Shown: piece after piece, positions 3,779 to 58,523 of the stretch | Layout of the letters: each line of letters begins with the position of its first letter | Position numbering within the stretch: position 1 is the first letter of the stretch | NCBI GenBank assembly: GCA_950097015.1 | Contig: CATNEN010000005.1 | Location: forward strand, 5,952,001-6,016,000 | Source of the DNA: Macrostomum hystrix | Taxonomy: Eukaryota > Animalia > Platyhelminthes | Direction of reading: 5' to 3' | DNA: 64,000 nt | Made by a program: the position numbers and the translations under genes | The notes under the pieces: generated by a model | Seen by the model: the letters and a program-made list of their open reading frames with translations, nothing else | Databases searched by the model: none | What the model was told of the DNA's origin: nothing

Positions 3779-6700
3779 ATGGACACCAATGCTAGCGTCC
3801 GTGGACCGGAAGATGCCGGATCAGAGGACCGGGAACTCGAGGATGCAGAATCGCCGGTCTCTACGTGGGAAGACAGTGGATCAATGAGTCAGAGAAGTGA
3901 GGCGGACTCAACTTTCTTTCTGCTGTGCGAAGTAAGCTTCTTAGAGCCAGAGTTCTTCTGGGACATCAATAAAAATAGTCTGCGCAATGACCTTCTTCGA
4001 GCCATAGACAGCAGCGACTCTGAGGAGCTGAGCAGAATATCAGACAGAATCAGAAGAGGACTTCAAGACGATGAGGATGCAGAAGTGAAAGTGCTGCTGC
4101 TTATGTCAGCCGCCAAGCCAGACCTGGAACTGCTGCAGTTCTTGACTGAAAGACACGCCGACTCATGCCTGCAGGTGCGAAGTTCATCAGCGAACAACAT
4201 GCTGCACTTTGTGTGCGGATGCGACAACTCAGATTCAGCAACTGCAGCCTTGGAGCTGATCTACAACAAAGTGGGCAAACAGCTGGTCAAGGAGCTCAAC
4301 AACTCGAAGCAGCTGCCTGTACACATCGCAGCTGAAAACAGCAAGAATCCTGCAGTGTTTCTCTGGCTCATTTCCACCGTCGAGGACAAGAATCTGTTTT
4401 TCGTTCAAGACGATGACGGCTACAGTGCTGTTAGCACTGCATTTTTTAAACAGAACTTGGACACACTCAAACAAGTGACTGAGAAGCTTAGTCTGGCGGA
4501 GTGCCTGGCGGCCAAAACTGCCAAAAATGAAAATATTTGCAAAAGAGCCGCATTCAATACAGCCAATCCTGCAGTGTTTCTCTGGCTCATTTCCACCGTC
4601 GAGGACAAGAATCTGTTTTTCGTTCAAGACGATGACGGCTACAGTGCTGTTAGCATAGCGTTTCTATATCAGAACTTGGACACACTCAAACAAGTGACTG
4701 AGAAGCTTGGTCTGGCGGAGTGCCTGGCGGCAAAAACTGCCAAAAATCAAAATATTTGCCTTCGAGCCGCAGCGAATTCAGCCAATCCTGCAGTGTTTCT
4801 CTGGCTCATTTCCACCGTCGAGGACAAGAATCTGTTTTTCGTTCAAGACGATGACGGCTACAGTGCTGTTAGCATAGCGTTTCTATATCAGAACTTGGAC
4901 ACACTCAAACAAGTGACTGAGAAGCTTGGTCTGGCGGAGTGCCTGGCGGCAAAAACTGCCAAAAATCAAAATATTTGCCTTGCAGCCGCATTCAATACAG
5001 CCAATCCTGCAGTGTTTCTCTGGCTCATTTCCACCGTCGAGGACAAGAATCTGTTTTTCGTTCAAGACGATTACGGCGAAAGTGCTGTTAGCGTAGCATT
5101 TGTAAAGCAGAACTTGGACACACTCAAACAAGTGACTGAGAAGCTTGGTCTGGCGGATTGCCTGGCGACGAAAACTGCCAAAAATCAAAATATTTGCCTT
5201 CGAGCCGCATTCAATCCAGCCAATCCTGCAGTGTTTCTCTGGCTCATTTCCATCGTCGAGGACAAGAATCAGTTTTTCGTTCAAGACGACGACGGCTACA
5301 GTGCTGTTAGCGGAGCATTTGAGAAACAGAACTTGGACACACTCAAACAAGTGACTGAGAAGCTTGGTCTGGCGGAGTGCCTGGCGGCAAAAACTACCAA
5401 AAATCAAAATATTTGCCTTCGAGCCGCATTCAATTCAGCCAATCCTGCAGTGTTTCTCTGGCTCATTTCCACCGTCGAGGACAAGAATCTTTTTTTCGTT
5501 CAAGACGATGACGGCTACAGTGCTGTTAGCATAGCGTTTTATAAGCAGAACTTGGACACTCTCAAACAAGTGACTGAGAAGCTTGGTCTGGCGGAGTGCC
5601 TGGCGGCAAAAACTGCCAAAAATGAAAATATTTGCCTTCGAGCCGCATTCAATACAGCCAATCCTGCAGTGTTTCTCTGGCTCATTTCCACCGTCGAGGA
5701 CAAGAATCTGTTTTCCGTTCAAGACGATTTTGGCAGAGCTGCTGTTAGCCGCGCATTTGAGGAGCAGAATTTGGACACACTCAAACAAGTGACTGAGAAG
5801 CTTGGTCTGGCGGAGTGCCTGGCGGCAAAAACTGCCAAAAATGAAAATATTTGCCTTCGAGCCGCATTCAATACAGCCAATCCTGCAGTGTTTCTCTGGC
5901 TCATTTCCATCGTCGAGGACAAGAATCTGTTTTTCTGTCACGATGATGACGGCTACAGTGCTGTTAGCATAGCATTTTATAAGCAGAACTTGGACACACT
6001 GAAACAAGCGACTGAGAAGCTTGGTCTGGCGGAGTGCCTGGCGGCAAAAACTGCCAAAAATGAAAATATTTGCCTTCGAGCCGCATTCAATACAGCCAAT
6101 CCTGCAGTGTTTCTCTGGCTCATTTTTACCGTCGAGGACAAGAATCTGTTTTTCGTTCAAGACGATGACGGCTACAGTGCTGTTAGCATCGCATTTCAGA
6201 AGCAGAACTTGGACACACTGAAACAAGTGACTGAGAAGCTTGGTCTGGCGGAGTGCCTGGCGGCAAAAACTGCCAAAAATCAAAATATTTGCCTTGCAGC
6301 CGCATTCAATACAGCCAATCCTGCAGTGTTTCTCTGGCTCATTTCCACCGTCGAGGACAAGAATCAGTTTTTCGTTCAAGACGATTACGGCGAAAGTGCT
6401 GTTAGCGTAGCATTTGTAAAGCAGAACTTGGACACACTCAAACAAGTGACTGAGAAGCTTGGTCTGGCGGATTGCCTGGCGACGAAAACTGCCAAAAATC
6501 AAAATATTTGCCTTCGAGCCGCATTCAATCCAGCCAATCCTGCAGTGTTTCTCTGGCTCATTTCCATCGTCGAGGACAAGAATCTGTTTTTCGTTCAAGA
6601 CGACGACGGCTACAGTGCTGTTAGCGGAGCATTTGAGAAACAGAACTTGGACACACTCAAACAAGTGACTGAGAAGCTTGGTCTGGCGGAGTGCCTGGCG

Positions 6701-9700
6701 GCAAAAACTACCAAAAATCAAAATATTTGCCTTCGAGCCGCATTCAATTCAGCCAATCCTGCAGTGTTTCTCTGGCTCATTTCCACCGTCGAGGACAAGA
6801 ATCTGTTTTTCGTTCACAACGATGACGGCTACAGTGCTGTAACCACAGCATTTGAGAAGCAGAATTTGGACACACTCAAACAAGTGACTGAGAAGCTTGG
6901 TCTGGCGGAGTGCCTGGCGGCAGAAAATGCCAAAGGTCAATGTGGTTTGCATGCAGCGGCCTGGAACAGAGAGAATCCAGCCTTATTTCGATGGCTCATT
7001 TCCATCGTCGAGGACAAGAAACTCTTCTTTGAAAAGCATGATGATGGAGCTGCTGCTGTATCCTTTGCCTTTTATCGCCAAGGGTTGGTCACAGTGAAGC
7101 TTTTGACAGACCGTTTTGGACTCAGCGAGTGTTTGAGTTGCATTGACAATCTAAATCGGGATTTGTTTTTTTTTTCCTCACTTAACAGCGTGAACCCGGG
7201 AGTATTTAGCTGGCTTCTAGAGCAGGTCTCCCAGCAATGTCCAGACAAGAAGTCCAGAATCTTCGAGTTGGATTCCAACGGCAACACTCTCCTTCATGCA
7301 CTGTTTAGGAAGGTCGATTTGTTTGGCGATGCTGATGCGCTTGCAGTGCTGATCGGCCGCATCGACTTTCTTTTTGAAAATGAAGTTGATCCAAGAAAAG
7401 AAAACAAATTCAGACTCAACTGTCTGCTTGCCCCTGAATCCAGTGCTTACAATCTCAATCGTCTTTTGCGAGCTCTTCAAAAATCAGCGCATTTGGAAAT
7501 CTTCAGAAATCTGCAAAGAAACTCGGAGGGCCTTCATGCAGCTCATGTCTTCTGCACTCGCTACGATCTCCGAGTTATCGAGAACGATTTGAGCAAGCTG
7601 TGCGGTCTCAGTCCTGACGAGCTCCTTGCAGTCCGAGTTTCTGACGGACCGCTGAAGGACGCGACTTGTCTGCACTTTGCCTGCGAATCCGGTCACAAGT
7701 TGAACATCGAATACCTTCTAAAGAAAGGACGGAAGCTGGAAGATGAGACAGACGCCGGGCAGACGAGTGTCGACTTTGCCTGCAACAAGGCGAAGCTCGA
7801 GGATGTTTTGGACGTTGCAGAGAAGTCAGTTGGTCTCAGAAAACTGCTCAAGCTGGTTGATCCAACGAAGCGAGCTCTGAACCTTCCGGACGTTCAGAGC
7901 GCCCGAGGTCACCTGACTCGTTTCAACGACTCATCGCTGAAGGCCAGCATTGAGGATGATAAATCCAGACGACAGACGAGAGGCAAGGAAGCCGGTGGGA
8001 TGAAAAACGAGAGTCTGCAGGCCGGACACGGAGCTGACAGCATTTCAAAGTCCGAGGATTCGCCAGAAGTGAAAATGCTGTTCAGAGCATTCGAGCTCGA
8101 CTCAAGTGAGATGCTCCGCAGCTTGATCAGTTTGGGCTTCGCCATCGATGAGATCGATGACCAGTTCTCCAGGCATGTCTCAAAACAGATTGGCAATGGG
8201 CGGGAAAGCAGTAAGTCTCCTACAATAGCCAAGCTTCAAAAGTACTTCTCCTCAGAAGGAAGAGATTCTGAAGCTCTCATGCTGATGGAGTACGCAGTGC
8301 TGCTCGAGAAGCCGAAGCTGCTCAATGACCTGATGCTTTTGCCACAGTTTGACATCATCCCACAGACTTTGAGGCTGCTCGTTTATCTCAAGCCCAGAGT
8401 GAAGTCGAGCAATGTTGAGAATCTGAAAAAAGTGCAAGCTCTAGCCTTGAACATTGTCGTCAATGTTCTGGAGCACCTCTACGTGAATGCCGATGAAAAA
8501 CAGCGGAATCTTGTTTTCGACTACCTGAGTGGCTCATTTATGGTGTCAGACGGGCATTCTCAGGTTCGAGTTCCGAGGTTCCCGCCACCATTGGATTATC
8601 TTACCAGAAAAATTTCAAACGATAAAACTGATCACGAAAAAGTGAGCAAAGATGCGAAGACACCAAAAAAGCCATCAGAAAAGAAGTCTGCAGCTGCAGT
8701 GATGTCAGTGATGGATCTGGTGCAGACCCTGGACTGTGACGATGTGTTTGCCACTGACTGCATCAGCCAGTTGGTGGATCGGCAGTGGAACGAGGCTCCA
8801 CCGCTGCCCTGGAGCAGTCCTGCACGCTGCTGCTCATGCAACATACCGCAAAAGGTGACAATTAAACAGCGGTTTATCATCCACTCTGTCTTTTTCCTGG
8901 TCTTTCTGCTCTACTTTGCTTGGTACGTGACGGATTTCAGTCGGACAAAGCAGTTTCCGATTCTAGACGTCGTCCTGTTGGCCTACGCGCTGTCCTTCAC
9001 TCTGCAGGAAGTCAACGACTTGCTGAACAAGCTGTCTATGAAGGACATACGAATTTTCAGAAGGCACATGAGATGTCCTCGCTACTTCACCGACTTCTTC
9101 AACTACTTTGACATGCTCGGCCTGCTGCTGATGTGGGCGGGGCTGGTCCTGAAGCTGCTTGGCCGGCTGAGCGACCCCAGCCTCATGCGCAGCTCTCAGG
9201 TCGTCCTCAGCGTCTCGTTCCTGTTCCTGGGATTCCGCTCCGTGGCCCTGCTCAGCTACTTCAAGGTCACTGGGCCGAACATCAATATGCTGAAGAGCTT
9301 GCTGTTCAAAGACCTGCTGCCATTCTTGATCATCATGCTGGTTCTGATCTTCTCATTTGGCATTTTCTTCTTCAACCTGCTGTTCCCGGCCTTCTCAGAC
9401 CTGACAGACGTCCTGGCTCTCGTGAAGATTTTCACAACGCCCTTGTCGCTGGCCTTAAGCATCTTTGAGCTCTCGCTGTTCGAGTCGTGCAACTCCAGCA
9501 GTCTCGCGACCGGACAGACCTGTGCGGACAGTGGAGGCAACCAGGTGTACAGCCTATTCCTGATGTTCGTGTACGTCTTGCTGGTGAACATTGTGATGTT
9601 CAATCTGCTGATCGCACTGTTCAACCGCACCGTGACAGCGATGGCCAGCAGGGCGGAGGTTCTGTGGCGCAAGAATCTGTTCGAGCTGCTGGAGGAGTTC

Positions 9701-9835
9701 GCAGAGGTCAGTCCGGTTCCGCCGCCGCTGTCGTTCCCGCTCTACGCCTGGAAACTGCTGCGGAGGTGCCGCCCTTCGCACTGCCGACCCTGCGCTGGCA
9801 AAGTCGGTCCTTTTGACGGCTCTGAGATAAGCAAG
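3779..9835 (+). CDS. Ankyrin-repeat TRP-family cation channel, paralog 1, large coding exon (2019 codons; spliced protein ~2201 aa)
   Basis: Uninterrupted ORF; ankyrin motifs (NNMLHFVC, QLPVHIAA, GNTLLHAL, ATCLHFACESGH); 13 x 73-aa units; pre-S1 FATDCISQLVDRQW; six hydrophobic segments; YFTDFFNYFD, GPNINML, NLLIALFNRTV, TRP-domain-like W...EEF...PVPPPL; ends at phase-0 donor AAG/GTAAGA. Confidence 0.92.
4307..7153 (+). repeat. Intragenic array of 13 x 219-bp units (two ankyrin-like repeats per 73-aa unit), gene 1
   Basis: NPA motif codons at 4346 and 6974 are exactly 12 x 219 bp apart; last unit is a diverged cap (GQCGLHAAAWN). Confidence 0.95.
8870..9740 (+). other. S1-S6 transmembrane/pore module and TRP domain of gene 1 (homologous regions ~34429-35299 and ~56847-57717)
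   Basis: Six hydrophobic helices; pore loop with Cys pair flanking an N-glycosylation sequon (CNSSSLATGQTC); S6-TRP helix register matches TRPM-type channels by eye. Confidence 0.85.
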
Positions 9836-10481
9836 GTAAGAGGCCTGGTGGACTGAGGGACTGACTCTGTTACTCACAGATGATAAATGGTCTGAATATA
9901 TATAGCCCTTAGATTCAGTCAGACAATGACCGAATCCAATTTTCGATTGAAAGAACTGATTGTGTGTACATGAATGCAAATGGCTTTGTAGCAAAGACAT
10001 GCTCAGATTATAGTAAGCTGGGGCTGGTCATGAAACTCTTGAGGACTGATTAACAGTAGAAGCAAGGTGAGAGGCCTGGTGAGCACAGGTGAACTGAGGG
10101 GCTGACTATGTTTACTCATATAGGCACTAGATTCAGTCAGACGATGACCGAATCCAATTCAGAGCAATGTTGGTTGTCCTTGTCACCAGGGTCTTCGACG
10201 AGAATCGTTGAATATCTTATCGATGCCGATGTTATGACTCTGGAAGTTGTTTCATCGGATAGAGCGGAAAATGTAGCCCGTCATCTGGATTTTTACAGTG
10301 GTTGGTTGGATATTTTTAAGATAGAGAAAAAAATAAAACATGTGGGTATTTGAATTACTCCCCTTGTGGTCTTTGTACTGTTAAGGATTAGTCAAGCCTC
10401 CAACCCGTTTGCCTGAGTTCTTAAGCCACTTAAACCAAACCGCTAGTTTCAAGGCGCTCTTCCTCACGGCTTCCGTTCCAG
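9836..10481 (+). other. Intron of gene 1 (646 nt, GT-AG, phase 0)
   Basis: GTAAGA donor and TTCCGTTCCAG acceptor; splicing joins exon 1 in frame to an open exon; same sites in all three paralogs. Confidence 0.85.
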
Positions 10482-11030
10482 CCGTGGTGGACGAACCGGA
10501 GCGACTTCAGCGGCTACCCCGAAGACTTCAAGCGCTTCCTGATCTTCCAGGCTGAGCAGCTGCGGCAGCAGCGGCCGCGGCTCCAGCGGGCGGTCGAGCG
10601 GCACAAGGGGGACGTCGATGTGATGAAGGCGCACGTGGAGAACCAGGTCAAGGACCTGCGGGAGGAACTGCTCACGGCTCAGAGAGAGGACACTGAGAAA
10701 ATCGAGACCGATGTGAAGGGCGTCAAAGAAAGTGTTGGAAAGCTGAACGCGGATGTTGGAAAGATGAACGCAGATGTTGGAAAGCTGAACGCGGATGTTG
10801 GAAAGCTGAACGCGGATGTTGGAAAGCTGAACGCGGATGTTGGAAAGCTGAACGCGGATGTTGGAAAGCTGAACGAGGGCGTCAACGAACTCAAAGAGCT
10901 GCAGCTCCGCCAACGAAGACGAGCAAAGCGTCTAGACGATAAGATGACAGAAAATTCCGAGAACCTGCAGCAGCAAATGTCGCAGGTGATGAGCATTCTG
11001 CAGCAACTGCAGCAGCAGCGTCAGCAGTGA
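10482..11030 (+). CDS. Terminal coding exon of gene 1 (182 aa; PWWTNRSDFSGYPEDFKRF... plus coiled coil)
   Basis: Open in phase 0 from the acceptor to TGA; contains ORF-track 10620..11030; GC-rich codon style like exon 1; heptad repeats. Confidence 0.85.
   Translation, partial: PWWTNRSDFSGYPEDFKRFLIFQAEQLRQQRPRLQRAVERHKGDVDVMKAHVENQVKDLREELLTAQREDTEKIETDVKGVKESVGKLNADVGKMNADVGKLNADVGKLNADVGKLNADVGKLNADVGKLNEGVNELKELQLRQRRRAKRLDDKMTENSENLQQQMSQVMSILQQLQQQRQQ
10737..10883 (+). repeat. 21-bp coding repeat, 7 heptads GK(L/M)N(AD/EG)V of the C-terminal coiled coil
   Basis: GTTGGAAAGCTGAACGCGGAT-type tandem repeats; V and L at a/d positions. Confidence 0.9.
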
Positions 11031-20177: not shown

Positions 20178-21222
20178 AAATTTAACTTTTTAGTTCAACA
20201 GCTTCCGGCTTTTGTAAGCACATCCAAGATCTTTAATCATAGTTTAAAGTCTGCATACTTTAAGTTACTTGTATCGTCATTTCCATTTGCCAATAGCTAC
20301 TTCACCAGCTGTTACAGTATTTAGGACAAAATATGTATTTATATGGGCTGGCCTGGCGGTGCAATCAGAGTGGAAAAAGTTGTCTTTTACAATTCCGTTT
20401 TCTGGAAGCCATTTGCTACTTTCTACTGTAAGTAGTGCTGATTAGGCATACCTTTTTAGACTACCATATCTTAGGCTATTATATTATTATTCCGATGAAC
20501 TGTAAACAGTGTGCAACAACTACAAATCATGAAGATTGCGGTGAAAAAGAGATATAAGTGGAAAAATATTTAAAAGAAAAGAAAAAATAGGACAAAATTG
20601 CGAGTGTAAATGAATGCTAAATAGAAGGGAAGAGAGAGGAGGAGAGAAGAAGAAGGAGTATCGAATTCTCAAGCATCATGTTCTATTTCATTTCTAGGCT
20701 GATAGAAGATAGGAGCTAACGGAGATAGATGGGTAGGAGACTGAAGAAATTGTTTCAATCGGGATCATTTATCAATGGGAATAATTCCTCAATAGGGATA
20801 ATTTGTCAGAGGAAAGTTTGATAAAATATGATCATTTGTCCGTGGGAAATCTAACGTCATGGGACAATTTTATCGCGGGAAAAATAGAAAATTGTGTCAA
20901 TTAATAAAACGAGAAAGTGAAATTTATTCTACATTGATAATTTTACAATTTTACGTGTAATAATTTGACAAAGAAGTATCCTTGTCGAAGAAGATAATTT
21001 GCCCAGGAAGGATAATTTAAACCAAGGGCTTTAGACAAAGGGGACACTTTCTCAAATGAGGATATATCGATTAAGGGACTTTAAGGAAAACAGATAAGTA
21101 TGTACAAAGAGACAGAGAATGTAAAATCAGGAACGATATACCACAATTAAATTTGACACACCAATTTTAAACTATTTGACCCGGGCGAATAAATTAATGA
21201 AAGAAGTAAAACCCAGCTGTTT

Positions 21223-22120
21223 TACTTGCTGTAGTACTGTAGTGATATTATACTTGCAGTAGTACTGTAGTGATATTATACTTGCAGTAGTACTGTAGTG
21301 ATATTGTACTTGCAGTAGTACTGTAGTGATATTATACTTGCAGTAGTACTGTAGTGATATTGCACTTGCAGTAGTACTGTAGTGATATCATACTTGCAGT
21401 AGTACTGTAGTGATATTATACTTGCAGTAGTACTGTAGTGATATCATACTTGCAGTAGTACTGTAGTGATATTATACTTGCAGTAGTACTGTAGTGATAT
21501 TATACTTGCAGTAGTACTGTAGTGATATTATACTTGCAGTAGTACTGTAGTGATATCATACTTGCAGTAGTACTGTAGTGATATTATACTTGCAGTAGTA
21601 CTGTAGTGAAATCATACTTGCAGTAGTACTGTAGTGATATTATACTTGCAGTAGTACTGTAGTGATATTATCCTTGGAGTAGTACTGTAGTGATATAATA
21701 CTTGCAGTAGTACTGTAGTGATATTATACTTGCAGTAGTACTGTAGTGATATTATCCTTGGAGTAGTACTGTAGTGATATAATACTTGCAGTAGTACTGT
21801 AGTGATATTGTGCTTGCAGTAGTACTGTAGTGATATAATACTTGCAGTAGTACTGTAGTGATATTGTACTTGCAGTAGTACTGTAGTGAAATCATACTTG
21901 CAGTAGTACTGTAGTGATATTGTACTTGCAGTAGTACTGTAGTGATATTATACTTGCAGTAGTACTGTAGTGATATTATACTTGCAGTAGTACTGTAGTG
22001 ATATTGTACTTGCAGTAGTACTGTAGTGATATTGTACTTGCAGTAGTACTGTAGTGACATTGTACTTGCAGTAGTACTGTAGTGATATTGTACTTGCAGT
22101 AGTATTGAGTGATAATTTGC
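21223..22120. repeat. Minisatellite G, 28-bp quasi-palindromic unit TACTTGCAGTAGTACTGTAGTGATATTA
   Basis: Direct inspection, ~32 copies; recurs at 46396-47630. Confidence 0.96.
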
Positions 22121-22275
22121 TTGCAGCATTGCTGCAGTATGAAGGGATTATTTGAGGCAAAAAGAGAGAAAGAATATGTTGGCGTTTAATTAGACTATTT
22201 TTTAACATCATATTTTCTTATTCAGTTTCGGCAGCCTTCTAACTGCTCTCGCACTGACAGCCTCTGAGTCTCAGC

Positions 22276-22392
22276 GTTGCTAGGCGAGTCTCCCCCGTTG
22301 CCCGGCGAGTGTCTCCGTTGCTAGGCGAGTCTCAGCAAGTCGCTCACCGCTGCTGTTGCAGCTGCGGCTGCATCGCGGACTCATCGGTGAGT
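22276..22392 (+). promoter_or_regulatory. X-box half-site cluster 3 (22276, 22297, 22317) followed by donor TCG/GTGAGT at 22387
   Basis: GTTGCTAGGCG half-sites ~20 bp apart; expanded to 7 half-sites at 47787-47920 with donor at 47980. Confidence 0.4.
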
Positions 22393-22565
22393 GTTGTTGG
22401 CATTGTAGTTTGCAATTGACTGGAAAAGTACAATTTGCATACTGGCGTTTGCTGACTCTGACCATAGACACCAATAGGAAATAAAGTGCGAATTTACTGA
22501 TTGGACGGGTTTGAAGCTTTTTGCTGAAATGGTAGATTTACGCACTAGGAAGCCTAGCATAAGTG

Positions 22566-22805
22566 CATTGATTTATGACCAAGTGTGTGTGCGCAAGACC
22601 AGTTCCTTCGGCCCATAGACAATACCCGTCTGGGATTTACTGCATAGTAGCTCAGAAGAGGGATGGCACGGAGATCAAGTGGGGCATCATTTACCGCACA
22701 GTTGCGGAATTTACTGCACACTTCAATCTATTTCTTTGATGGCCTTTGGGCCATAAACTATACACGAGCTTGAGACGTTTACGCACACTTGGTTACATGT
22801 CAATG
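22566..22805. mobile_element. MITE-like insert with imperfect ~25-bp terminal inverted repeats
   Basis: Left CATTGATTTATGACCAAGTGTG vs reverse complement of right end CATTGACATGTAACCAAGTGTG; segment 22531-22806 is absent from homologous sites at ~48095 and ~49830; no TSD identified. Confidence 0.4.
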
Positions 22806-22904
22806 GGCTGGTGGAATTTCGCTGGCGAGCTTTGTTTACAGTTTAGGCGGAAATTCTTCGTTTGGTTGTACAGTTGCCGACTGGGGCGAATATTTTGAGA
22901 ACTG

Positions 22905-23797
22905 AAGGGATAATTTGCGGATTTAGGGGATAATTCGCGGATATCGGGGATAATTCACAGATTTAGGGGATAATTCGTGTATTTAGGGGATAATTCGCAG
23001 ATTTAGGGGATACTTCGCGGGGATAATTAGGGGATAATTTAGGGGATAATTCACGGATTTAGGGGATAATTCGCGGATTTAGAAGATAACTCGCGGATTT
23101 AGAGGATAATTCGCGGATTTAGAGGATAATTCGCGGATTTAGAGGATAATTCGCGGATTTCGGGGATAATTCACAGATTTAGGGGATAATTCGCGGGTAT
23201 AATTAGGGGATAATTTAGGGGATAATTTGCGGATTTCGGTGATAATTCGCGGGTTTAGGGGATAATTCGTGTATTTAGGGGATAATTCGCAGATTTAGGG
23301 GATACTTCGCGGGGATAATTAGGGGATAATTTAGGGGATAATTCGCGGATTTAGGGGACAACTCGCGGATTTAGGGAATAATTCGCGGATTTAGAAAATA
23401 ACTCGCGGATTTAGGGGATAATTCGCGGATTTAGAGGATAATTCGCGGAAATCGGGGATAATTCGCGGATTTAGGGGACAACTCGTGGATTTAGGGGATA
23501 ATTCGCGGATTTAGAAGATAACTCGCGGATTTAGGGGATAATTCACGGATTTGGAGAATAATTCGCGGAAATCGGGGATAATTCGCGGATTTAAAGCACA
23601 ATTCGCGGAAATCGGGGATAATTCACGGGTTTAGGGGATAACTCGCGGATTTAGGGGATAATTCGCGGATTTAGAAGATAACTCGCGGATTTAGAGGATA
23701 ATTCGCGGAAATCGGGGATAATTCGTGGATTTACTGGATTATTCGCGGATTTAGAGGATAATTCGCGGTTTTAATGGATAATTTGTGGATTTACTGT
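22905..23797. repeat. Minisatellite H, 20-bp unit TTTAGGGGATAATTCGCGGA (left arm)
   Basis: Direct inspection; degenerate copies. Confidence 0.9.
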
Positions 23798-24471
23798 TGA
23801 AATATTTTATTTTCGCCTCCGTTCTATCGATATCTAGCTTAATTAATGTTCTTGTTATCTTCAATTAATATCTCTAGCAGAGAGGCCAGTTACAAGCGGC
23901 TATTTCTAAGACTTAAGGAGGCGTGGGAAATCGACTATCTTTTCCTGATATTGCACTCACTTTGGATGTTATGTTCTCAATCGAATTATATTTAGATGGT
24001 CTTAAAGCAAACAATCACAAAGATGAAAACTCACTATAAAATTATTGAGACTATAAAATTACTGAGAGAAAGTGATCCCCAAACACAAGCTTAATGCTTA
24101 CTCACGAATCCTTTAGTAAGCTTACAACTGGCGGAAATATGTTTTCACTATAAATAGTGGATTAGGAGTTTCAGGAATTCTAATCTCAGTGAAAATATTT
24201 TTATTCTTGACTAAGGTTTAGACGGAGGTTTAGAGCTGGCCAGGGATAGCAATGGCCGATGGCGGCCTAATTAGATCGGATTAGACTCTTTCTCTCAGTG
24301 CCAGAGTTTTATATAATCCGGCCAAAACGGCCGCCATTTGACAGCAGCCTCCAAGCGAATCCTAGAGCTCCTGCAAACGCATCCTCGCACAGGAGGAAAA
24401 GCTGAATATTCTCTGGTCTTTGCAAGCGCGCACAGATGTAAAAATCGCATAGATTAAATTGTAACACTTCA
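23798..24471 (-). mobile_element. Solo LTR (674 bp) inserted in minisatellite H
   Basis: TG...CA termini with imperfect inverted ends (TGAAATATT vs TGAAGTGTT); 4-bp TSD CTGT (23794-23797, 24472-24475); removal restores satellite variant ...TTACTGTATAATTCG seen at ~24685; minus-strand TATATAAAA (~24305-24313) and AATAAA (~24200, ~23808). Confidence 0.75.
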
Positions 24472-24850
24472 CTGTATAATTCGTGGATTTACGGGATAAT
24501 TCGTGGATTTAGGGGATAATTCGCGGATATCGGGGATAATTCACAGATTTAGGGGATAATTCGTGGATTTACGGGATAATATCTAAATTCGCGGATTTAG
24601 GGGATAAATTGCGGATTGAAGGGATAATCTCTTAATTTGAGGATTTAGAGGATAATTCGCGGATTTAGGGGATAATTTGTGGAATTACTGTATAATTCGT
24701 GGATTTACGGGATAATCTCTTAATTTGAGGATTTAGGGGATAATTCGCGGATTTAGGGGATAATTCGTGGATTTACGGGATAATTCGTGGATTTACTGGA
24801 TAATATCTAAATTCGCGGATTTAGGGGATAAATTGCGGATTGAAGGGATT
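24472..24850. repeat. Minisatellite H (right arm)
   Basis: Same 20-bp unit resumes after the LTR. Confidence 0.88.
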
Positions 24851-25487
24851 AATTTGCCTATGGGTTGATAAGAGCGACATTTTTTCTGTTTAAGGGATAA
24901 AGGGCCATTGGAGGGAATAAATTTCCTAGAATGCTATACCACATAGTATAATAATAGTATAGTAAATAAAATAGTAGATAACATAATATTTTTTCTATTT
25001 AATGGGATAGAGGGGCAACTGTGGGGATAATTAGCAAAATATTGGGACTAAACTGCCATTGACTTGACAGTTTGCAAGATAAGTGGGATAACCTGCAATG
25101 GAGGGTGATTCTTAGAAACTGGGCTGGCAAACAATATGATTCTCAAGTTTTCCCTCTATGCAGTGGGAGGCTGTTGCTAAAGTTGCGACTGGACATTTGC
25201 ATACAGCCCTAACAAAGTAGGAGTAACAAAAACTGAAGTGCTTCACACACAGGGGCAAAGTTGTTGCTTTGTTCGTTTGAGATTACCAAATTACCCTACC
25301 TACACTTACCTAAAGAATGGGCAATTTTGAAAGATTTCGGCAAGCGAGCCACCGAACAATAAACTACCGAATAACTGCAATGAATGGTCTTGGCTTCTTT
25401 TCTTTGCATTTTCTGCTATTTTCTGGCAATCATGTTCGGCTAATGTTCTTCATTTACACGAATGCCACAAAGGCATTTCGAGACATG

Positions 25488-25717
25488 AATAGGCAGAGGA
25501 ATAGGCAGAGGAATAGGCAGAGGAATAGGCAGACGAATAGACAGAGGAATAGATAGAGGAATAGACAGAGGAATAGACAGAGGAATAGGCAGAGGAATAG
25601 GCAGACGAATAGATAGAGGAATAGACAGAGGAATAGACAGAGGAATAGATAGAGGAATAGACAGAGGAATAGATAGAGGAATAGACAGAGGAATAGACAG
25701 AAGAATAGACAGAGGAA
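25488..25717. repeat. 12-bp repeat AATAG(A/G)CAGAGG
   Basis: Direct inspection; short remnant at ~50490-50545. Confidence 0.9.
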
Positions 25718-25734
25718 CGTAGAGAGGATTTGGG

Positions 25735-35394: not shown

Positions 35395-35799
35395 GTAAGA
35401 GGCCTGGTGGACTGAGGGACTGACTCTGTTACTCACAGATGATAAATGGTCTGAATATATAGCCCTTAGATTCAGTCAGACAATGACCGAATCCAATTTT
35501 CAATTGCAAGAACTGATTGTGTGTACATGAATGTAAATGGCTTTATAGCAAAGACATGCTCAGATTATAGTAAGCTGGGGCTGGTCATGAAACTCTTGAG
35601 GACTGATTAACAGTAGAAGCAAGGTGAGAGGCCTGGTGAGCGCAGGTGAACTGAGGGGCTGACTATGTTTACTCATATAGGCACTAGATTGAGTCAGACG
35701 ATGACCGAATCCAATTTGAATGGAAATAACTGGTTGTGTGCACATGATTGCAAATAAGCTCATGTTTCAAGGCGCTCTTCCTCACGGCTTCCGTTCCAG
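35395..35799 (+). other. Intron of gene 2 (405 nt, GT-AG, phase 0)
   Basis: Same donor and acceptor as gene 1; in-frame join. Confidence 0.85.
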
Positions 35800-36294
35800 C
35801 CGTGGTGGACGAACCGGAGCGACTTCAGCGGCTACCCCGAAGACTTCAAGCGCTTCCTGATCTTCCAGGCCGAGCAGCTCCGGCAGCAGCGGCCACGGCT
35901 GCAGCGGGCGGTCGAGCGGCACAAGGGGGACGTCGATGTGCTGAAGGCGCACGTGGAGAACCAGGTCAAGGACCTGCGGGATAATATTCAGGATGTGCTC
36001 ACGGCTCAGAGAGAGGACACTGAGAAAATCGAGACCGATGTGAAGGGCGTCAGAGAAAGTGTTGGAAAGCTGAACGCGGATGTTGGAAAGCTGAACGCGG
36101 ATGTTGGAAAGCTGAACGCGGATGTTGGAAAGCTGAACGAGGACGTCAACGAACTCAAAGAGCTGCAGCTCCGCCAACGAAGACGAGTAAAGCGAGTGAA
36201 CGATGAGATGAAAGAAAACTTCGAGAACCTGCAGCAGCAAATGTCGCAGGTGATGAGCATTCTGCAGCAACTGCAGCAGCAGCTTCAGCAGTGA
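35800..36294 (+). CDS. Terminal coding exon of gene 2 (164 aa, coiled coil with 4 GKLNxDV heptads at 36064-36147)
   Basis: Open in phase 0 to TGA; homologous to 10482-11030. Confidence 0.85.
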   Translation, partial: PWWTNRSDFSGYPEDFKRFLIFQAEQLRQQRPRLQRAVERHKGDVDVLKAHVENQVKDLRDNIQDVLTAQREDTEKIETDVKGVRESVGKLNADVGKLNADVGKLNADVGKLNEDVNELKELQLRQRRRVKRVNDEMKENFENLQQQMSQVMSILQQLQQQLQQ

Positions 36295-49730: not shown

Positions 49731-50544
49731 TTTGCGTACTTGTAGTTGCTAACTTTGTCGATAGTAACCCTATTGGAGATAGTGTGCTCATTGACTGATT
49801 GAACGGGTCCTGAAGCTTCTTGCTGAAATACGCTGGTGGAATTTCACTTTGTGTTTAAGTTTAGGCAAAAATTCTTCGTTTGGATGTACAGTTGCCGTCT
49901 GAGGCGAATATTTTGAGAACTGAGGGGACAATTCGTGGATTTAGGGGATAATTTGCGGATTTAGAGGATAATTCGAGGATTTGTGGGATAATGCGCGGAT
50001 TTAGGGGATAATGCGCGGATTTGGGGGATAACGCGCGGATTTAGGGGATAATTTTAAATGGGATAGAGGGGAAACTGTGTTGATTATTAGCTAAATATTG
50101 GGATTAAACTGCCGTTGATTTGACATATTGCAAGATAAGTGGGATAAGCTGCAATGGACGGTGATTCTTAGAAACTCGGCTGACAAACAATATTATTCTC
50201 AAGTTTTCCCACTATGCAGTGAGAGGCTGTTGCTAAAGTTGCGACTGAACAGCGAGCCACCGTATAATAAACTACCGAATAACTGCAATGAATGGCCTTG
50301 GTTACAGGTTCTACTTTTCTTCCGCGTTTCTGTTTGGCAATAATCTTTCGCCATGCCGACACGCAAAGTCCTGGTTTGATTTGTCTGTTGTAAAATTCAA
50401 TACCTCAGCGATTAGGAAAACACGTTCGGCTAGTGTTCTTCATTTACACGATACTCACAAAAGAATTTCGAGAAATAAATAGATGGAGGGGAATAGTCAT
50501 AGACAGAAGAATAGACGGAGGAATAGACGGAGGAATATACAGGG

Positions 50545-51330
50545 GATTAGAGTGAGCAACTGAGAGGATGAGAGTGAGGAACTGAGAGGGATGAGAGTGA
50601 GGAACTGAGAGGGATGAGAGTGAGGAACTGAGAGGGATGAGAGTGAGGAACTGAGAGGGATGAGAGTGAGGAACTGAGAGGGATGAGAGTGAGGAACTGA
50701 GAGGGATGAGAGTGAGGAACTCAGAGGGATTAGAGTGAGGAACTGAGAGGGATTAGAGTGAGGAACTGAGAGGGATGAGAGTGAGGAACTGAGAGGACAT
50801 TGGAGTGAGGAACTCAGAGGGATTAGAGTGAGGAACTGAGAGGGATTAGAGTGAGGAACTGAGAGGACATTGGAGTGAGGAACTCAGAGGGATTAGAGTG
50901 AGGAACAGAGAGGGATGAGAGTGAGGAACAGAGAGGGATGAGAGTGAGGAACAGAGAGGGATGAGAGTGAGGAACAGAGAGGGATGAGAGTGAGGAACTG
51001 AGAGGGATTAGAGTGAGGAACTCAGAGGGATGAGAGTGAGGAACTGAGGGATTAGAGTGAGGAACTGAGAGGGATTAGAGTGAGGAACTGAGAGGGATGA
51101 GAGTGAGGAACTCAGAGGGATGAGAGTGAGGAACAGAGAGGGATGAGAGTGAGGAACAGAGAGGGATGAGAGTGAGGAACTGAGAGGGATTAGAGTGAGG
51201 AACTCAGAGGGATGAGAGTGAGGAACTGAGAGGGATTAGAGTGAGGAACTGAGAGGGATTAGAGTGAGGAACTGAGAGGGATTAGAGTGAGGAACCGAGA
51301 GGACATTGGAGTGAGGAACAGAGAGGGTGA
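50545..51330. repeat. Minisatellite A (23 bp), unit 3
   Basis: Same unit and same terminal sequence as 1-3190. Confidence 0.95.
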
Positions 51331-51896: not shown

Positions 51897-51950
51897 CCAA
51901 AAAAGTCTTCTGAGAAGAATTTCACGGACTAGCAAGAGAAGCAAGGGTTC

Positions 51951-54900
51951 ATGGACACCAATGCTAGCGTCCGTGGACCGGGAGATGCCAGATCAGAGGA
52001 CCGGGAACTCGAGGATGCAGAATCGCCGGTCTCTACGTGGGAAGACAGTGGATCAATGAGTCAGAGAAGTGAGTCGGACTCAACTTTCTCTCTGAGCTAT
52101 GAAAACTTCGTAATGAACCAAGAGCCGGAGTTGCTAGTTTTCTTCTGGGACATCAAGCATGGAGGTGTTGAAAATAGTCTGCGCAATGACCTTCTTCGAG
52201 CCATAGACAAAAGCGACTCTGAGGAGCTGAGCAGAATATCAGACAGAATCAGAAAAGGACTTCAAGACGATGAGGATGCAGAAGTGAAAGCGCTGCTGCT
52301 TCTGTCAGCCGCCGAGCAAGAGCTGGAACTGCTGCAGTTCTTGACTGAAAGACATGCCGACTCATGCCTGCAGGCGCGAAGTTCATCAGCAAACAACATG
52401 CTGCACTTCGTGTGCGGATGCAACAACTCAGATTCAGCAACTGCAGCCTTGGAGCTGATCTATAACAAAGTGGGCAAACAGCTGGTCAAGGAGGTCAACA
52501 ACTCGAAGCAGCTGCCTGTACACATCGCCGCATTCAATACAGCCAATCCTGCAGTGTTTCTCTGGCTCATTTCCACCGTCGAGGACAAGAAACTGTTTTT
52601 CGTTCAAGACGATGACGGCTACAGTGCTGTTAGCATCGCCTTTGATCAGCTGAACTTGGACACACTCAAACAAGTGACTGAGAAGCTTGGTCTGGCGGAG
52701 TGCCTGGCGGCAAAAACTGCCAAAAATGAAAATATTTGCCTTCGAGCCGCAGCGAATTCAGCCAATCCTGCAGTGTTTCTCTGGCTCATTTCCACCGTCG
52801 AGGACAAGAATCTGTTTTTCGTTCAAGACGATGACGGCTACAGTGCTGTTAGCACCGCCTTTGATGAGCTGAACTTGGACACACTCAAACAAGTGACTGA
52901 GAAGCTTGGTCTGGCGGAGTGCCTGGCGGCGAAAACTGCCAAAAATCAAAATATTTGCCTTCTAGCCGCATTCAATACAGGCAATCCTGCAGTGTTTCTC
53001 TGGCTCATTTCCACTGTCGAGGACAAGAATCTGTTTTTCGTTCAAGACGATGACGGCTACAGTGCTGTTAGCACAGCGTTTCTACATCAGAACTTGGACA
53101 CACTCAAGCAAGTGACTGAGAAGCTTGGTCTGGCGGAGTGCCTGGCGGCAAAAACTGCCAAAAATGAAAATATTTGCCTTCGAGCCGCAGCGAATTCAGC
53201 CAATCCTGCAGTGTTTCTCTGGCTCATTTCCACCGTCGAGGACAAGAATCTGTTTTTCGTTCAAGACGATGACGGCTACAGTGCTCTTAGCGCAGCATTC
53301 GAGAAGCAGAACTTGGACACTCTCAAACAAGTGACTGAGAAGCTTGGTCTGGCGGAGTGCCTGGCGGCAAAAACTGCCAAAAATCAAAATATTTGCCTTC
53401 GAGCCGCATTCAATACAGCCAATCCTGCAGTGTTTCTCTGGCTCATTTCCACCGTCGAGGACAAGAATCTGTTTTTCGTTCAAGACGATGACGGCTACAG
53501 TGCTGTTAGCACAGCGTTTCTACATCAGAACTTGGACACACTCAAGCAAGTGACTGAGAAGCTTGGTCTGGCGGAGTGCCTGGCGGCAAAAACTGCCAAA
53601 AATGAAAATATTTGCCTTCGAGCCGCAGCGAATTCAGCCAATCCTGCAGTGTTTCTCTGGCTCATTTCCACCGTCGAGGACAAGAATCTGTTTTTCGTTC
53701 AAGACGATGACGGCTACAGTGCTCTTAGCGCAGCATTCGAGAAGCAGAACTTGGACACTCTCAAACAAGTGACTGAGAAGCTTGGTCTGGCGGAGTGCCT
53801 GGCGGCAAAAACTGCCAAAAATCAAAATATTTGCCTTCGAGCCGCATTCAATACAGCCAATCCTGCAGTGTTTCTCTGGCTCATTTCCACCGTCGAGGAC
53901 AAGAATCTGTTTTTCGTTCAAGACGATGACGGCTACAGTGCTCTTAGCGCAGCATTCGAGAAGCAGAACTTGGACACTCTCAAACAAGTGACTGAGAAGC
54001 TTGGTCTGGCGGAGTGCCTGGCGGCAAAAACTGCCAAAAATCAAAATATTTGCCTTCGAGCCGCATTCAATACAGCCAATCCTGCAGTGTTTCTCTGGCT
54101 CATTTCCACCGTCGAGGACAAGAATCTGTTTTTCGTTCAAGACGATGACGGCTACAGTGCTGTTAGCACTGCATTTGAGAAGCAGAATTTGTACACTCTC
54201 AAACAAGTGACTGAGAAGCTTGGTCTGGCGGAGTGCCTGGCGGCAAAAACTGCCAAAAATCAAAATATTTGTAAAAGAGCGGCATTCAATACAGCCAATC
54301 CTGCAGTGTTTCTCTGGCTCATTTTTACCGTCGAGGACAAGAATCAGTTTTTCGTTCAAGACGATGACGGCGAAAGTGCTGTTAGCACCGCATTTGAGAA
54401 GCTGAACTTGGACACACTCAAACAAGTGACTGCGAAGCTTGGTCTAGCAGAGTGCCTGGCGGCAAAAACTGCCAAAAATGAAAATATTTGTAAAAGAGCC
54501 GCATTCAATACAGCCAATCCTGCAGTGTTTCTCTGGCTCATTTTTACCGTCGAGGACAAGAATCAGTTTTTCGTTCAAGACGATGACGGCGACAGTGCTG
54601 TTTGCATAGCATTTTATAGGCAGAATTTGTACACACTCAAACAAGTGACTGAGAAGCTTGGTCTGGCGGAGTGCCTGGCAGCAAAAATTGCCAAAAATCA
54701 AAATATTTGTCTTGTAGCCGCATTCAATACAGACAATCCTGCAGTGTTTCTCTGGCTCATTTCCACCGTCGAGGACAAGAAACTGTTTTTCGTTCATGAC
54801 GATTATGGCCAAACTGCTGTTAGCCACGCATTTGAGAAGCAGAATTTGGACACTCTCAAACAAGTGACTGAGAAGCTTGGTCTGGCGGAGTGCCTGGCGG

Positions 54901-57812
54901 CAAAAACTGCCAAAAATGAAAATATTTGCCTTCGAGCCGCATTCAATACAGCCAATCCTGCAGTGTTTCTCTGGCTCATTTCCATCGTCGAGGACAAGAA
55001 ACTCTTCTTTGAAAAGGATGATGATGGTGATGATGGTGTATCCATTGCCTTTCATCGACAAGGCTTGAACACAGTGAAGTTTTTGACAGACCGTTTTGGA
55101 CTCAGCGAGTGTTTGAGCTGCATTGACAATCTAAATCGGGATTTGTTTTATGATTCCATTCTGAACAGCGCGAACCCGGGAGTATTTCCCTGGCTTCTCG
55201 AGCAGGTCTCCCAGCAATGTCCAGAAAAGAAGTCCAGAATTTGCGAGTTGGATTCCAACGGCAACACTCTGCTTCATGCACTGTTTAGGAAGGTCGATTT
55301 GTTCGGCGATGTTGATGCGCTTGCAGTGCTGATTGGCCGCATAAACTTTCTTTTTGAAAATGAAGTTGATCCAAGAAAAGAAAACAAATTTAGACTCAAC
55401 TGTCTGCTTGCCGCTGAATCCAGTGCTGACAATCTCAATTGTCTTTTGCGAGCTCTTCAAAGATCAGCGCATTTGGAAATCTTCAGAAATCTGCAAAGAA
55501 ACTCGGAGGGCCTTCACGTAGCTCATGTCTTCTGCACTCGCTACGAGCTCCGAGATATCAAGAACGATTTGAGCAAGCTGTGCGGTCTCAGTCCTGACGA
55601 GCTCCTTGCAGTCCGAGTTTCTGACGGACCGCTGAAGGATGCAACTTGTCTGCACTTTGCCTGCGAATCCGGTCACAAGTTGAACATCGAATACCTTCTA
55701 ATGAAAGGACGGAGGCTGGAAGATGAGACAGACGCCGGGCAGACGAGTGTCGACTTTGCCTGCAACAAGGCGAAGCTCGAGGATGTTTTGGATGTTGCAG
55801 AGAAGTCAGTTGGTCTCGGAAAACTGCTCAAGCTGGTTGATCCAACGAAGCGAGCTCTGAACCTTCCGGACGTTCAGAGCGCCCGAGGTCACCTGACTCG
55901 ATTCAACGACTCATCGCTCAAGGCCAGCATTGAAGATGATAAATCCAGACGACAGACGAGAGGCAAGGAAGCCGGTGAGATTAAAAATGAGAGTCATGTC
56001 GGATACGGAGCTGACAGCATTTCAAAGTCCGAGGATTCGCCAGAAGTGAAAATGCTGTTCAGAGCATTCGAGCTCGACTCAAATGAGATGCTCCGCAGCT
56101 TGATCAGTTTGGGCTTCGCCATCGATGAGATCGATGACCAGTTCTCCAGGCATGTCTCAAAGCAGATTGGCAATGGACGGGAAAGCAGTAAGTCTCCTAC
56201 AATAGCCAAGCTTCAAAAGTACTTCTCCTCAGAAGAAAGAGATTCTGAAGCTCTCATGCTGATGGAGTACGCAGTGCTGCTCGAGAAGCCGAAGCTGCTC
56301 AATGACCTGATGCTGCTGCCACAGTTTGACATCATCCCACAGACTTTGAGGCTGCTCGTTTATCTCAAGCCCAGAGTGAAGTCGAGCAATGCTGAGAATC
56401 TGAAAAAAGTGCAAGCTCTAGCCTTGAACATTGTCGTCAATGTTCTGGAGCACCTCTACGTGAATGCTGATGAAGAAGAGCGGAATCTTGTTTTCGACTA
56501 CCTGACTGGCTCATTTATGGTGTTAGACGGGCATTCTCAGGTTCGAGGTCCGAGGTTCCCGCCACCATTGGATTATCTTACCAGACCAATTTCAAACGAT
56601 AAAACTGATCTCGAAAAAGTGAGCAAAGATGCGAAGAAACCAAAAAAGCCATCAGAAAAGAAGTCTGCAGCTGCAGTGATGTCAGTGATGGAGCTGGTGC
56701 AGACCCTGGACTGTGACGATGTGTTTGCCACTGACTGTATCAGCCAGTTGGTGGATCGGCAGTGGAACGAGGCTCCACCGCTGTCCTGGAGCAGTCCTGC
56801 ACGCTGCTGCTCATGCAACATACTGCAAAAGGTGACAATTCAACAGCGGTTTATCGTCCACTCTGCCTTTTTCCTGGTCTTTCTGCTCTACTTTGCCTGG
56901 TACGTGACGGATTTCAGTCGGACAAAGCAGTTTCCGATTCTAGACGTCGTCCTGTTGGCCTACGCGCTGTCCTTCACTCTGCAGGAAGTCAACGACTTGC
57001 TGAACAAGCTGTCTGTGAAGGACATACGAATTTTCAGAATGCACATGAGATGTCCTCGCTACTTCACCGACTTCTTCAACTACTTTGACATGCTCGGCCT
57101 GCTGCTGATGTGGGCGGGGCTGGTCCTGAAGCTGCTTGGCCGGCTGAGCGACCCCAGCCTCATGCGCAGCTCTCAGGTCGTCCTCAGCGTCTCGTTCCTG
57201 TTCCTGGGATTCCGCTCCGTGGCCCTGCTCAGCTACTTCAAGGTCACTGGGCCGAACATCAATATGCTGAAGAGCTTGCTGTTCAAAGACCTGCTGCCAT
57301 TCTTGATCATCATGCTGGTTCTGATCTTCTCATTTGGCATTTTCTTCTTCAACCTGCTGTTCCCGGCCTTCTCAGACCTGACAGACGTCCTGGCTCTCGT
57401 GAAGATTTTCACAACGCCCCTGGCGCTGGCCTTAAGCATCTTTGAGTTCTCGCTGTTCGAGTCGTGCAACTCCAGCAGTCTCGCGACCGGACAGACCTGT
57501 GCGGACAGTGGAGGCAACCAGGTGTACAGCCTATTCCTGATGTTCGTGTACGTCTTGCTGGTAAACATTGTGATGTTCAACCTGCTGATCGCACTGTTCA
57601 ACCGCACCGTGACAGCGATGGCCAGCAGGGCGGAGGTTCTGTGGCGCAAGAATCTGTTCGAGCTGCTGGAGGAGTTCGCAGAGGTCAGTCCGGTTCCGCC
57701 GCCGCTGTCGTTCCCGCTCTACGCCTGGAAACTGCTGCGGAGGTGCCGCCCTTCGCACTGCCGACCCTGCGCTGGCAAAGTCGGTCCTTCTGACGGCTCT
57801 GAGAGAAGCAAG
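51951..57812 (+). CDS. Ankyrin-repeat TRP-family cation channel, paralog 3, large coding exon (1954 codons; spliced protein ~2055 aa)
   Basis: Uninterrupted ORF; 12 x 73-aa units; same channel core; phase-0 donor at 57813. Confidence 0.92.
52506..55133 (+). repeat. Intragenic array of 12 x 219-bp double-ankyrin units, gene 3
   Basis: NPA codons at 52545 and 54954 are 11 x 219 bp apart; first and last units are hybrids of cap and internal halves. Confidence 0.95.
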
Positions 57813-58217
57813 GTAAGAGGCCTGGTGGACTGAGGGACTGACTCTGTTACTCACAGATGATAAATGGTCTGAATATATAGCCCTTAGATTCAGTCAGACA
57901 ATGACCGAATCCAATTTTCAATTGCAAGAACTGATTGTGTGTACATGAATGTAAATGGCTTTATAGCAAAGACATGCTCAGATTATAGTAAGCTGGGGCT
58001 GGTCATGAAACTCTTGAGGACTGATTAACAGTAGAAGCAAGGTGAGAGGCCTGGTGAGCGCAGGTGAACTGAGGGGCTGACTATGTTTACTCATATAGGC
58101 ACTAGATTCAGTCAGACGATGACCGAATCCAATTTAAATGGAAATAACTGGTTGTGTGCACATGATTGCAAATAAGCTCATGTTTCAAGGCGCTCTTCCT
58201 CACGGCTTCCGTTCCAG
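57813..58217 (+). other. Intron of gene 3 (405 nt, GT-AG, phase 0)
   Basis: Near-identical to gene 2 intron. Confidence 0.85.
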
Positions 58218-58523
58218 CCGTGGTGGACGAACCGGAGCGACTTCAGCGGCTACCCCGAAGACTTCAAGCGCTTCCTGATCTTCCAGGCCGAGCAGCTCCG
58301 GCAGCAGCGGCCACGGCTGCAGCGGGCGGTCGAGCGGCACAAGGGGGACGTCGATGTGCTGAAGGCGCACGTGGAGAACCAGGTCAAGGACCTGCGGGAG
58401 GAACTGCGGGATAATATTCAGGATGTGCTCACGGCTCAGAGAGAGGACACTGAGAACCTGCAGCAGCAAATGTCGCAGGTGATGAGCATTCTGCAGCAAC
58501 TGCAGCAGCAGCTTCAGCAGTGA
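58218..58523 (+). CDS. Terminal coding exon of gene 3 (101 aa; heptad block deleted in frame)
   Basis: Open in phase 0 to TGA at 58521-58523; 67-codon deletion relative to gene 2 at GAGAA microhomology. Confidence 0.82.
   Translation, partial: PWWTNRSDFSGYPEDFKRFLIFQAEQLRQQRPRLQRAVERHKGDVDVLKAHVENQVKDLREELRDNIQDVLTAQREDTENLQQQMSQVMSILQQLQQQLQQ

Follow-up and report, generated by a model that had tools for sequence, protein, structure and literature searches.

What kind of channel carries a long array of near-identical ankyrin modules at its N-terminus, and what might such an array be for? These questions are raised by a stretch of 64,000 nucleotides from the flatworm Macrostomum hystrix (GenBank assembly GCA_950097015.1, contig CATNEN010000005.1, positions 5,952,001 to 6,016,000 of the forward strand), hereafter called the window. 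It encodes three tandem paralogs, genes A, B and C, of a Macrostomum-specific subfamily in which an ankyrin array sits on a body resembling TRP channels of the TRPM type. A sequence-only reading of the window had described three intact paralogs with a near-identical channel core and 13, 21 and 12 modules that differ in order. This description was confirmed by the open reading frames (ORFs), by Tandem Repeats Finder and by the 95–97% identity of the cores. For the function of the arrays, the reading that we prefer, at about even chances, is that they form a cytoplasmic groove that evolves fast, binds a partner or ligand inside the cell and is coupled to a cation pore of the TRPM type.

Three tandem genes with a TRPM-like channel core

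Three very long ORFs were found on the + strand of the window (3779–9856, 27727–35415 and 51951–57833). Since frames of 2000–2560 codons run through repeat arrays, they are not due to chance. Antisense ORFs within the arrays (e.g. 29122–32505, − strand) and ORFs within minisatellites were rejected as by-products of repeats, the repeat unit being free of stops on the antisense strand. Homologs from Macrostomum lignano extend past the ends of the ORFs, and a second exon was located by tblastn 370–650 bp downstream of them. The donor (AAG, followed by GTAAGA) and the acceptor (ending in TTCCAG) join in frame. The two-exon genes A, B and C encode proteins of 2201, 2720 and 2055 amino acids, respectively, and position 58523, where the sequence-only reading had set the end of the system, is the stop codon in exon 2 of gene C. 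The features of the genes are:

3779–9835, + strand: gene A exon 1 (2019 codons), encoding an N-terminal cap, the ankyrin array, a linker and the channel core; based on the ORF, the donor and the transcript joint
4346–7192, + strand: gene A array, 13 units of 219 bp (12 clean, 1 diverged)
7193–8854, + strand: gene A post-array region, with more ankyrin repeats and a helical linker aligning with the TRPM MHR3/4 region; based on Pfam ankyrin matches and structural alignment
8855–9730, + strand: gene A S1–S6, pore and TRP helix, with the motifs YFTDFFNYFD, GP, SIFELS, NLLIALFN, LWRKNLFELLEEF and PPPL
9836–10481, + strand: gene A intron, GT..AG, 646 bp; based on transcript contigs of three runs
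10482–11030, + strand: gene A exon 2, C-terminal coiled coil with seven VGKLNAD heptads (21-bp repeat at 10733–10875)
27727–35394, + strand: gene B exon 1, without the acidic N-terminus of A and C
28147–32751, + strand: gene B array, 21 units (20 clean, 1 diverged of 75 amino acids)
35800–36294, + strand: gene B exon 2, coiled coil with four heptads, preceded by an intron at 35395–35799
51951–57812, + strand: gene C exon 1
52545–55172, + strand: gene C array, 12 units (11 clean, 1 diverged)
58218–58523, + strand: gene C exon 2, short coiled coil with no heptad repeats, preceded by an intron at 57813–58217

The first 45 acidic residues common to A and C are missing from gene B, and the DNA upstream of B is unrelated. 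A 5' end or first exon unlike that of A and C is probable for gene B.

Pfam searches of the window proteins detected ankyrin repeats and Ion_trans, the latter above cut-off. The 95–97% identity among the three proteins extends over the approximately 880 amino acids after the arrays. In a sequence search against the PDB, all channel chains among the top 60 matches were TRPM (E-values 3e-15 to 1.6e-8), and no NOMPC chain was among these 60. For the last 887 residues encoded by exon 1, an AlphaFold model (pLDDT 80) matched TRPM4, TRPM3 and TRPM2 in Foldseek; NOMPC ranked only 21st, mainly via its ankyrin repeats and the generic TRP fold. Residues 234–869 of the model aligned to residues 409–1099 of the TRPM2 chanzyme with a Z of 24.4, which covers MHR3/4, the transmembrane domain and the TRP helix. 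Within this match, the MHR3/4 part (234–560 against TRPM2 409–840) is nearly equalled by the TRPC4 linker domain (Z 22). The motifs YFTDFFNYFD (S3), GP (S4–S5 linker), SIFELS with the pore glutamate and NLLIALFN (S6) are common to the window proteins and the consensus of 34 TRPM-like proteins, and the TRP helix LWRKNLFELLEEF, followed by PPPL, also matches this consensus. The proteins belong to the TRP superfamily, as seen from the six-helix Ion_trans core, the pore loop and the TRP helix, and their transmembrane core and TRP domain sequence are of the TRPM type. The TRP-type cation pore proposed by the sequence-only reading was therefore upheld, the core being closest to TRPM by PDB sequence matches, Foldseek and the structural alignment.

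Some other domains of TRPM channels went undetected. SLOG/LSDAT (MHR1/2) was not detected by Pfam in the three window proteins or their M. lignano relatives, and ankyrin repeats hold the N-terminus. Pfam detected no NUDIX domain, no NOD (NACHT/NB-ARC) domain and no TRPM2-like domain (PF25508) in the window proteins. A C-terminal coiled coil, as in TRPM, is encoded by exon 2, which gave generic coiled-coil matches and no match to the Pfam family TRPM_tetra. Pfam matches to DUF1292, DUF7574, P11_C, NMB0315_dom_I, GIDE and others were discarded, as they were summed weak matches to repeats with no significant single stretch.

Both termini are cytoplasmic in every solved TRP channel. Hydropathy analysis of the window proteins showed S1–S6, with hydrophobic segments only at residues 1693–1956. 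N-terminal to residue 1693 the proteins have neither a signal peptide nor a membrane segment, and with six membrane helices the two termini share one side; array and coiled coil are therefore predicted to be cytoplasmic. An array facing the cytoplasm would have no direct contact with extracellular ligands. A surface receptor for such ligands, serving allorecognition or chemosensation as the sequence-only reading had suggested, is thus very improbable; what speaks for it is the analogy with variable receptors, together with the sensory roles of many TRP channels.

An exhaustive search with HMMER returned 33 representative clusters (E < 1e-30), of which the named ones were almost all M. lignano proteins of unknown function. 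The closest relative was approximately 70–75% identical. A tree of the transmembrane region (unrooted, with no TRPC, TRPN, TRPA or TRPV outgroup) contained three well-supported groups. The first was the Macrostomum family with the window proteins (support 100/99). The second was a flatworm-wide clade with few ankyrin repeats and the TRPM2-like domain PF25508 (support 99/93), with members from Schistocephalus, Opisthorchis, Dicrocoelium and M. lignano. The third held the sampled SLOG-bearing TRPM proteins, including a choanoflagellate protein; in this unrooted tree both flatworm ankyrin clades fell outside it. This search and phylogeny had been named as a check by the sequence-only reading, and they set the Macrostomum family apart as a group of its own. 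An Opisthorchis protein (P0025), taken for a family member by its E-value, was rejected since the tree placed it in the other flatworm ankyrin clade. Among the 34 nearest TRPM-like proteins, one carried a TIR domain and another fibronectin type III. A full family member encoded on a 5.1-kb contig (NCBI MEE4247282.1) is filed under a metagenome-assembled genome of a Kangiellaceae bacterium; most likely, this contig is eukaryotic DNA that contaminated the bin.

In the databases searched, ankyrin repeats before a TRPM-like body occurred only in flatworms. Ankyrin repeats have been stated to be absent from TRPM and TRPS (PMC7306681; PMC13143021). Searches of the literature with M. lignano gene identifiers, and with Macrostomum combined with terms for ankyrin and channel, found no description of the family or the domain combination. 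The claim that no TRP family with this organisation had been described stood as far as the literature is concerned, but an ankyrin N-terminus on a TRPM-like body proved to be widespread in flatworm proteomes. In flatworms, entire clades of proteins combine ankyrin arrays with a TRPM-like body, an apparent domain swap among TRP channels that has gone unnoticed so far.

Expression was assessed with assembled contigs of public short-read runs, which are too short to span the arrays. The GT..AG joint between 9835 and 10482 of gene A was seen in contigs of three runs (X10, X1 and X4, with depths of 8, 140 and 224, respectively), and the intron of gene A had near-zero depth in the same transcript contigs, apart from 10151–10287. 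Since the splice joint is present and the intron nearly empty, the runs hold transcripts: the genes, or near-identical copies, are transcribed and spliced. The segment at 10151–10287 (approximately 140 bp) had a contig depth of 580–695 with joints between opposite strands, and resembles a dispersed inverted-repeat element whose transcripts come from other places in the genome. The 21-bp repeats of the coiled coil are exact and encode one VGKLNAD heptad each, with seven in gene A (10733–10875), four in gene B (36060–36143) and none in gene C. One transcript contig skipped 126 nt, equal to six heptads. The difference in heptad number and the skip in this contig indicate that the length of the coiled coil is variable, like that of the array.

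The genes sit inside a unit of approximately 24 kb that is tandemly duplicated with 92–97% identity, the intergenic series of minisatellites being kept. This series, of 19–32-bp minisatellites, recurs in the same order in every 24-kb unit with very different copy numbers. A purine-rich minisatellite with units of 23–24 bp and strong GC skew precedes each gene (3–3191, 25490–27123 and 50543–51327). Palindromic 12–13-mers resembling RFX X-boxes (GTTGCTAGGCAAC and close variants) were found at 17417, 17544, 19953, 42348, 42475, 45102, 49692 and 49718, which places these eight 2–10 kb upstream of genes B and C. A strict 14-mer X-box had no match, even when one mismatch was allowed.

Homogenised arrays with variable codons

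Tandem Repeats Finder detected the arrays with a period of 219 bp in 12.2, 20.2 and 11.3 copies, with 92% matches and no indels. In the protein register, these correspond to 12+1, 20+1 and 11+1 units of 73 amino acids, each holding two ankyrin repeats, and the last unit was diverged in every array. The 43 clean units were 92% identical in DNA, yet 39 of them were distinct, and their order differed between the genes. Their mean amino acid identity was 87–89% over 800–1460 amino acids. A search with the 73-amino-acid module (ten units) against proteins of 400–1277 amino acids returned only one member of the channel family; in this search the module occurred in no other family, and a sensor module shared with other proteins was not indicated.

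Long near-identical tandem repeats are hard to assemble, and the arrays might in principle be collapsed or mis-joined. Such an artefact is extremely improbable: there were no N bases, frame breaks or indels in the 43 units, the three arrays differed in unit order while their flanks diverged consistently, and transcript contigs from other runs matched the cores and the splice. An independent assembly, that of M. lignano, holds the same type of array. Its locus (NIVC01000211.1) contains a homologous ORF at 20827–24885 with a 219-bp array at 20848–22122 (5.8 copies, 92% matches). The gene model published for this homolog is 15.5 kb long, and its translation does not yield the protein listed for it.

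Multi-unit blocks were duplicated within the arrays (units A4–5 were the same as A10–11 and C3–4 the same as C5–6, and B10–12 was similar to B15–17). Identical units occurred in genes B and C, and for 15 of the 43 units the closest relative lay in another gene. Variation within the unit fell into two patches, with 26 haplotypes of patch 1 (codons 22–41) and 20 of patch 2 (codons 61–73), and their combinations were shuffled. Unit identity was 92% within the window and 91% within the M. lignano locus, in contrast to 74% between the two species, which indicates concerted evolution. The sequence-only reading had proposed such evolution of the arrays, and the block duplications and the unit types common to the paralogs bear this out.

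Amino acid variation was concentrated at unit codons 26, 31, 34, 35, 36, 62, 66, 67, 70 and 72. A structural model of the array (pLDDT 95.6) formed an ankyrin solenoid and matched ankyrin-1, AnkB with a peptide in its groove, fly TRPA1, NOMPC and DARPins. In the model, the first (inner) helix of one repeat spans positions 28–35 and that of the other 64–70, and codons 26, 31, 34, 35, 62, 66, 67 and 70 map to these helices or to the loops that immediately precede them. By alignment to the ankyrin consensus, we take unit codons 24, 26, 34 and 35 to be DARPin library positions 3, 5, 13 and 14. Variable codons on the inner helices and preceding loops, including these library positions, agree with the diversified surface residues and DARPin-like arrays described by the sequence-only reading. 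Hydrophobic and aromatic residues were common at the variable groove positions. Codons 26, 34 and 35 were also the most variable in the M. lignano arrays.

Selection was analysed with site models in our own GY94 code, which reproduces the M0 likelihood of IQ-TREE. With a constant synonymous rate (dS), M2a was favoured over M1a by a doubled log-likelihood difference (2dlnL) of 62.7, with 14% of sites at a ratio of non-synonymous to synonymous rates (dN/dS, omega) of 4.2. Synonymous diversity was very uneven, at 0.2–0.44 in the patches versus 0.02–0.04 in the scaffold (approximately tenfold), and a model with a regional synonymous rate was used for this reason; it gave a 2dlnL of 29.9 and an omega of 3.4. 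The neighbouring codons had an omega of 0.2–0.3, and those within the patches one of 0.33 in a tree-free minimum-change count. That specific sites diversify at the neutral rate or faster is clear. The sequence-only reading had named codon site models as a test for dN/dS > 1. Support for such a ratio was strong with a constant dS, modest with the more conservative models and lacking in the tree-free count at the variable codons given below; an omega above 1 at the variable codons is suggested, not established.

The synonymous diversity of the patches also far exceeded the dS between the paralogous cores (0.025–0.05). This old synonymous diversity argues against a simple recent amplification followed by drift, and indicates that diversity in the patches survives homogenisation.

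Several points weigh against a groove shaped by selection for binding. The support for an omega above 1 became weaker in conservative tests: patch 1 alone, on its own tree, gave a 2dlnL of 8.6 (P ~0.013), and the tree-free count at the ten variable codons gave an omega of 1.5 (P 0.22). Since the units recombine, the site models' assumption of a single tree does not hold. Between the cores, dN/dS was fairly high (0.3–0.8), which fits young, weakly constrained duplicates. Surface positions are the least constrained in any ankyrin repeat, and relaxed constraint alone predicts variable sites there; it does not predict the excess of old synonymous diversity. The exposure of the variable residues is itself a prediction from secondary structure and canonical ankyrin geometry.

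These points bring in a neutral explanation, in which the arrays are young amplifications shaped by recent unequal crossing-over and by drift at weakly constrained codons, so that unit number and order would mean nothing beyond a folded ankyrin domain. We consider this quite unlikely. The locus is rich in minisatellites, the 24-kb unit is itself duplicated at high identity, the dN/dS of the cores fits, and the tree-free count at the variable codons is compatible with an omega of 1. However, all three genes have retained intact frames of 2000–2700 codons, and they are expressed. Homogenised 219-bp arrays are present in a second species despite the 74% unit identity between the two, and the same positions are the most variable in both. 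Recent amplification with drift does not predict the approximately tenfold synonymous diversity of the patches relative to the scaffold.

Possible roles of the array

Unequal crossing-over and gene conversion keep the modules approximately 92% alike within a species, and some ten codons, on the inner helices and in the loops that precede them, remain highly diverse. If the array does form a cytoplasmic binding groove, as we prefer to read it, its inner groove would be the fast-evolving binding surface for an intracellular protein or an extended peptide. Occupancy of the groove, or its loss, might be passed on via the linker and the TRP helix and so gate the cation pore. The pore would probably conduct Ca2+ or be modulated by it; acidic and amide residues of S2/S3 and the pore glutamate are kept. 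Candidate residues for a dependence on Ca2+ are E1744, N1775 and D1778 and, in the pore, E1897. Paralogs that differ in the content and number of their units could then differ in partner specificity.

In a different explanation, which we regard as rather unlikely, the array is a tunable gating spring or tether like that of NOMPC/TRPN, linking the pore with the cytoskeleton, possibly in mechanosensory cells that bear cilia. The paralogs, with 12–21 double units, would thereby have springs that differ in length or compliance, and the variable codons would be unconstrained surface. NOMPC has 29 ankyrin repeats, and the total of approximately 33–51 repeats in the window proteins is of this order. 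The array model matched the ankyrin domains of NOMPC and fly TRPA1, array length differs between paralogs though their cores are almost identical, and the X-box-like palindromes between the genes (GTTGCTAGGCAAC) hint at RFX control in ciliated cells. The conservative selection tests do not demand an omega above 1. Against a spring, the core is TRPM-like and not TRPN-like, and known spring arrays are non-homogenised with a fixed number of repeats. The hydrophobic and aromatic groove residues and the old synonymous diversity at these positions fit a binding surface better than a free one, and the maximum-likelihood site models favour an omega of 3–4.

A more specific form of the binding groove can be drawn by analogy with immune receptors. 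The genes might encode germline-encoded intracellular receptors, in which the groove would detect a foreign or altered cytosolic protein (viral, from a parasite or from a selfish element) and would open the pore, leading to signalling or cell death. We think this role unlikely. If true, it would make the family an animal counterpart of the fungal NLRs with homogenised repeats and of the resistosomes that act as Ca2+ channels.

To our knowledge, near-identical repeat arrays with a few diverse groove codons are very rare in animals. In fungi, such arrays mark receptors that quickly evolve new specificities. This combination is known from fungal immune receptors and is so far undescribed for an ion channel, where an array wired to the pore suggests a path from molecular recognition to ion flux within one protein. 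Macrostomum can be manipulated by transgenesis and by RNA interference. With their near-constant channel, the three paralogs amount to array-swap experiments made by nature, and the modules could serve as natural DARPin-like scaffolds with an electrical read-out.

Comparison with known systems

The window proteins share with TRPM2, TRPM3 and TRPM4 (including Nematostella TRPM2 and the choanoflagellate TRPM2 chanzyme) the transmembrane core, the GP of the S4–S5 linker, the N..D of S3 and the pore glutamate. They further share NLLIA(L/M)F in S6, the TRP helix followed by PPPL and a C-terminal coiled coil, and their helical linker can be aligned with MHR3/4. Unlike TRPM, they are without SLOG/MHR1-2 and NUDT9H, and approximately 33–51 ankyrin repeats form the N-terminus instead. 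The flatworm-wide clade with ankyrin repeats, PF25508 and Ion_trans also has ankyrin repeats before a TRPM-like body. It differs from the window family in that these repeats are few, ordinary and non-homogenised, in the presence of PF25508, and in forming a separate clade.

NOMPC/TRPN and TRPA1 resemble the window proteins in that the TRP pore carries a long ankyrin solenoid at its cytoplasmic N-terminus; the folds also agree. In contrast to the window proteins, their pore is of another TRP type, and their repeats are individually diverged and fixed in number, with no concerted evolution and no hypervariable codons. DARPins likewise have near-identical scaffold repeats that vary at a few groove positions. 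The window arrays differ from DARPins in being natural and in their 73-amino-acid double module with extra short helices; additional variation affects helix position 10 and, within the second repeat, codons 62, 66, 67 and 70.

The fungal NLRs HET-E, HET-D and Pa_3_8560 have repeats of >85% identity that change in number, with selected sites on the concave face of the ankyrin domain (PMC4986451, PMC12222747). The window proteins differ from them in the absence of a NOD, in having an ion channel as the effector within the same polypeptide, and in their animal host. Their repeats are at least 85% identical across 100 or more amino acids, as in this type of fungal receptor. In both systems highly identical repeats evolve in concert and are reshuffled within and between loci, repeat number differs (here between paralogs), and the variable sites lie on the inner helices and adjacent loops. 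The analogy with fungal NLRs drawn by the sequence-only reading is therefore apt (PMC4986451).

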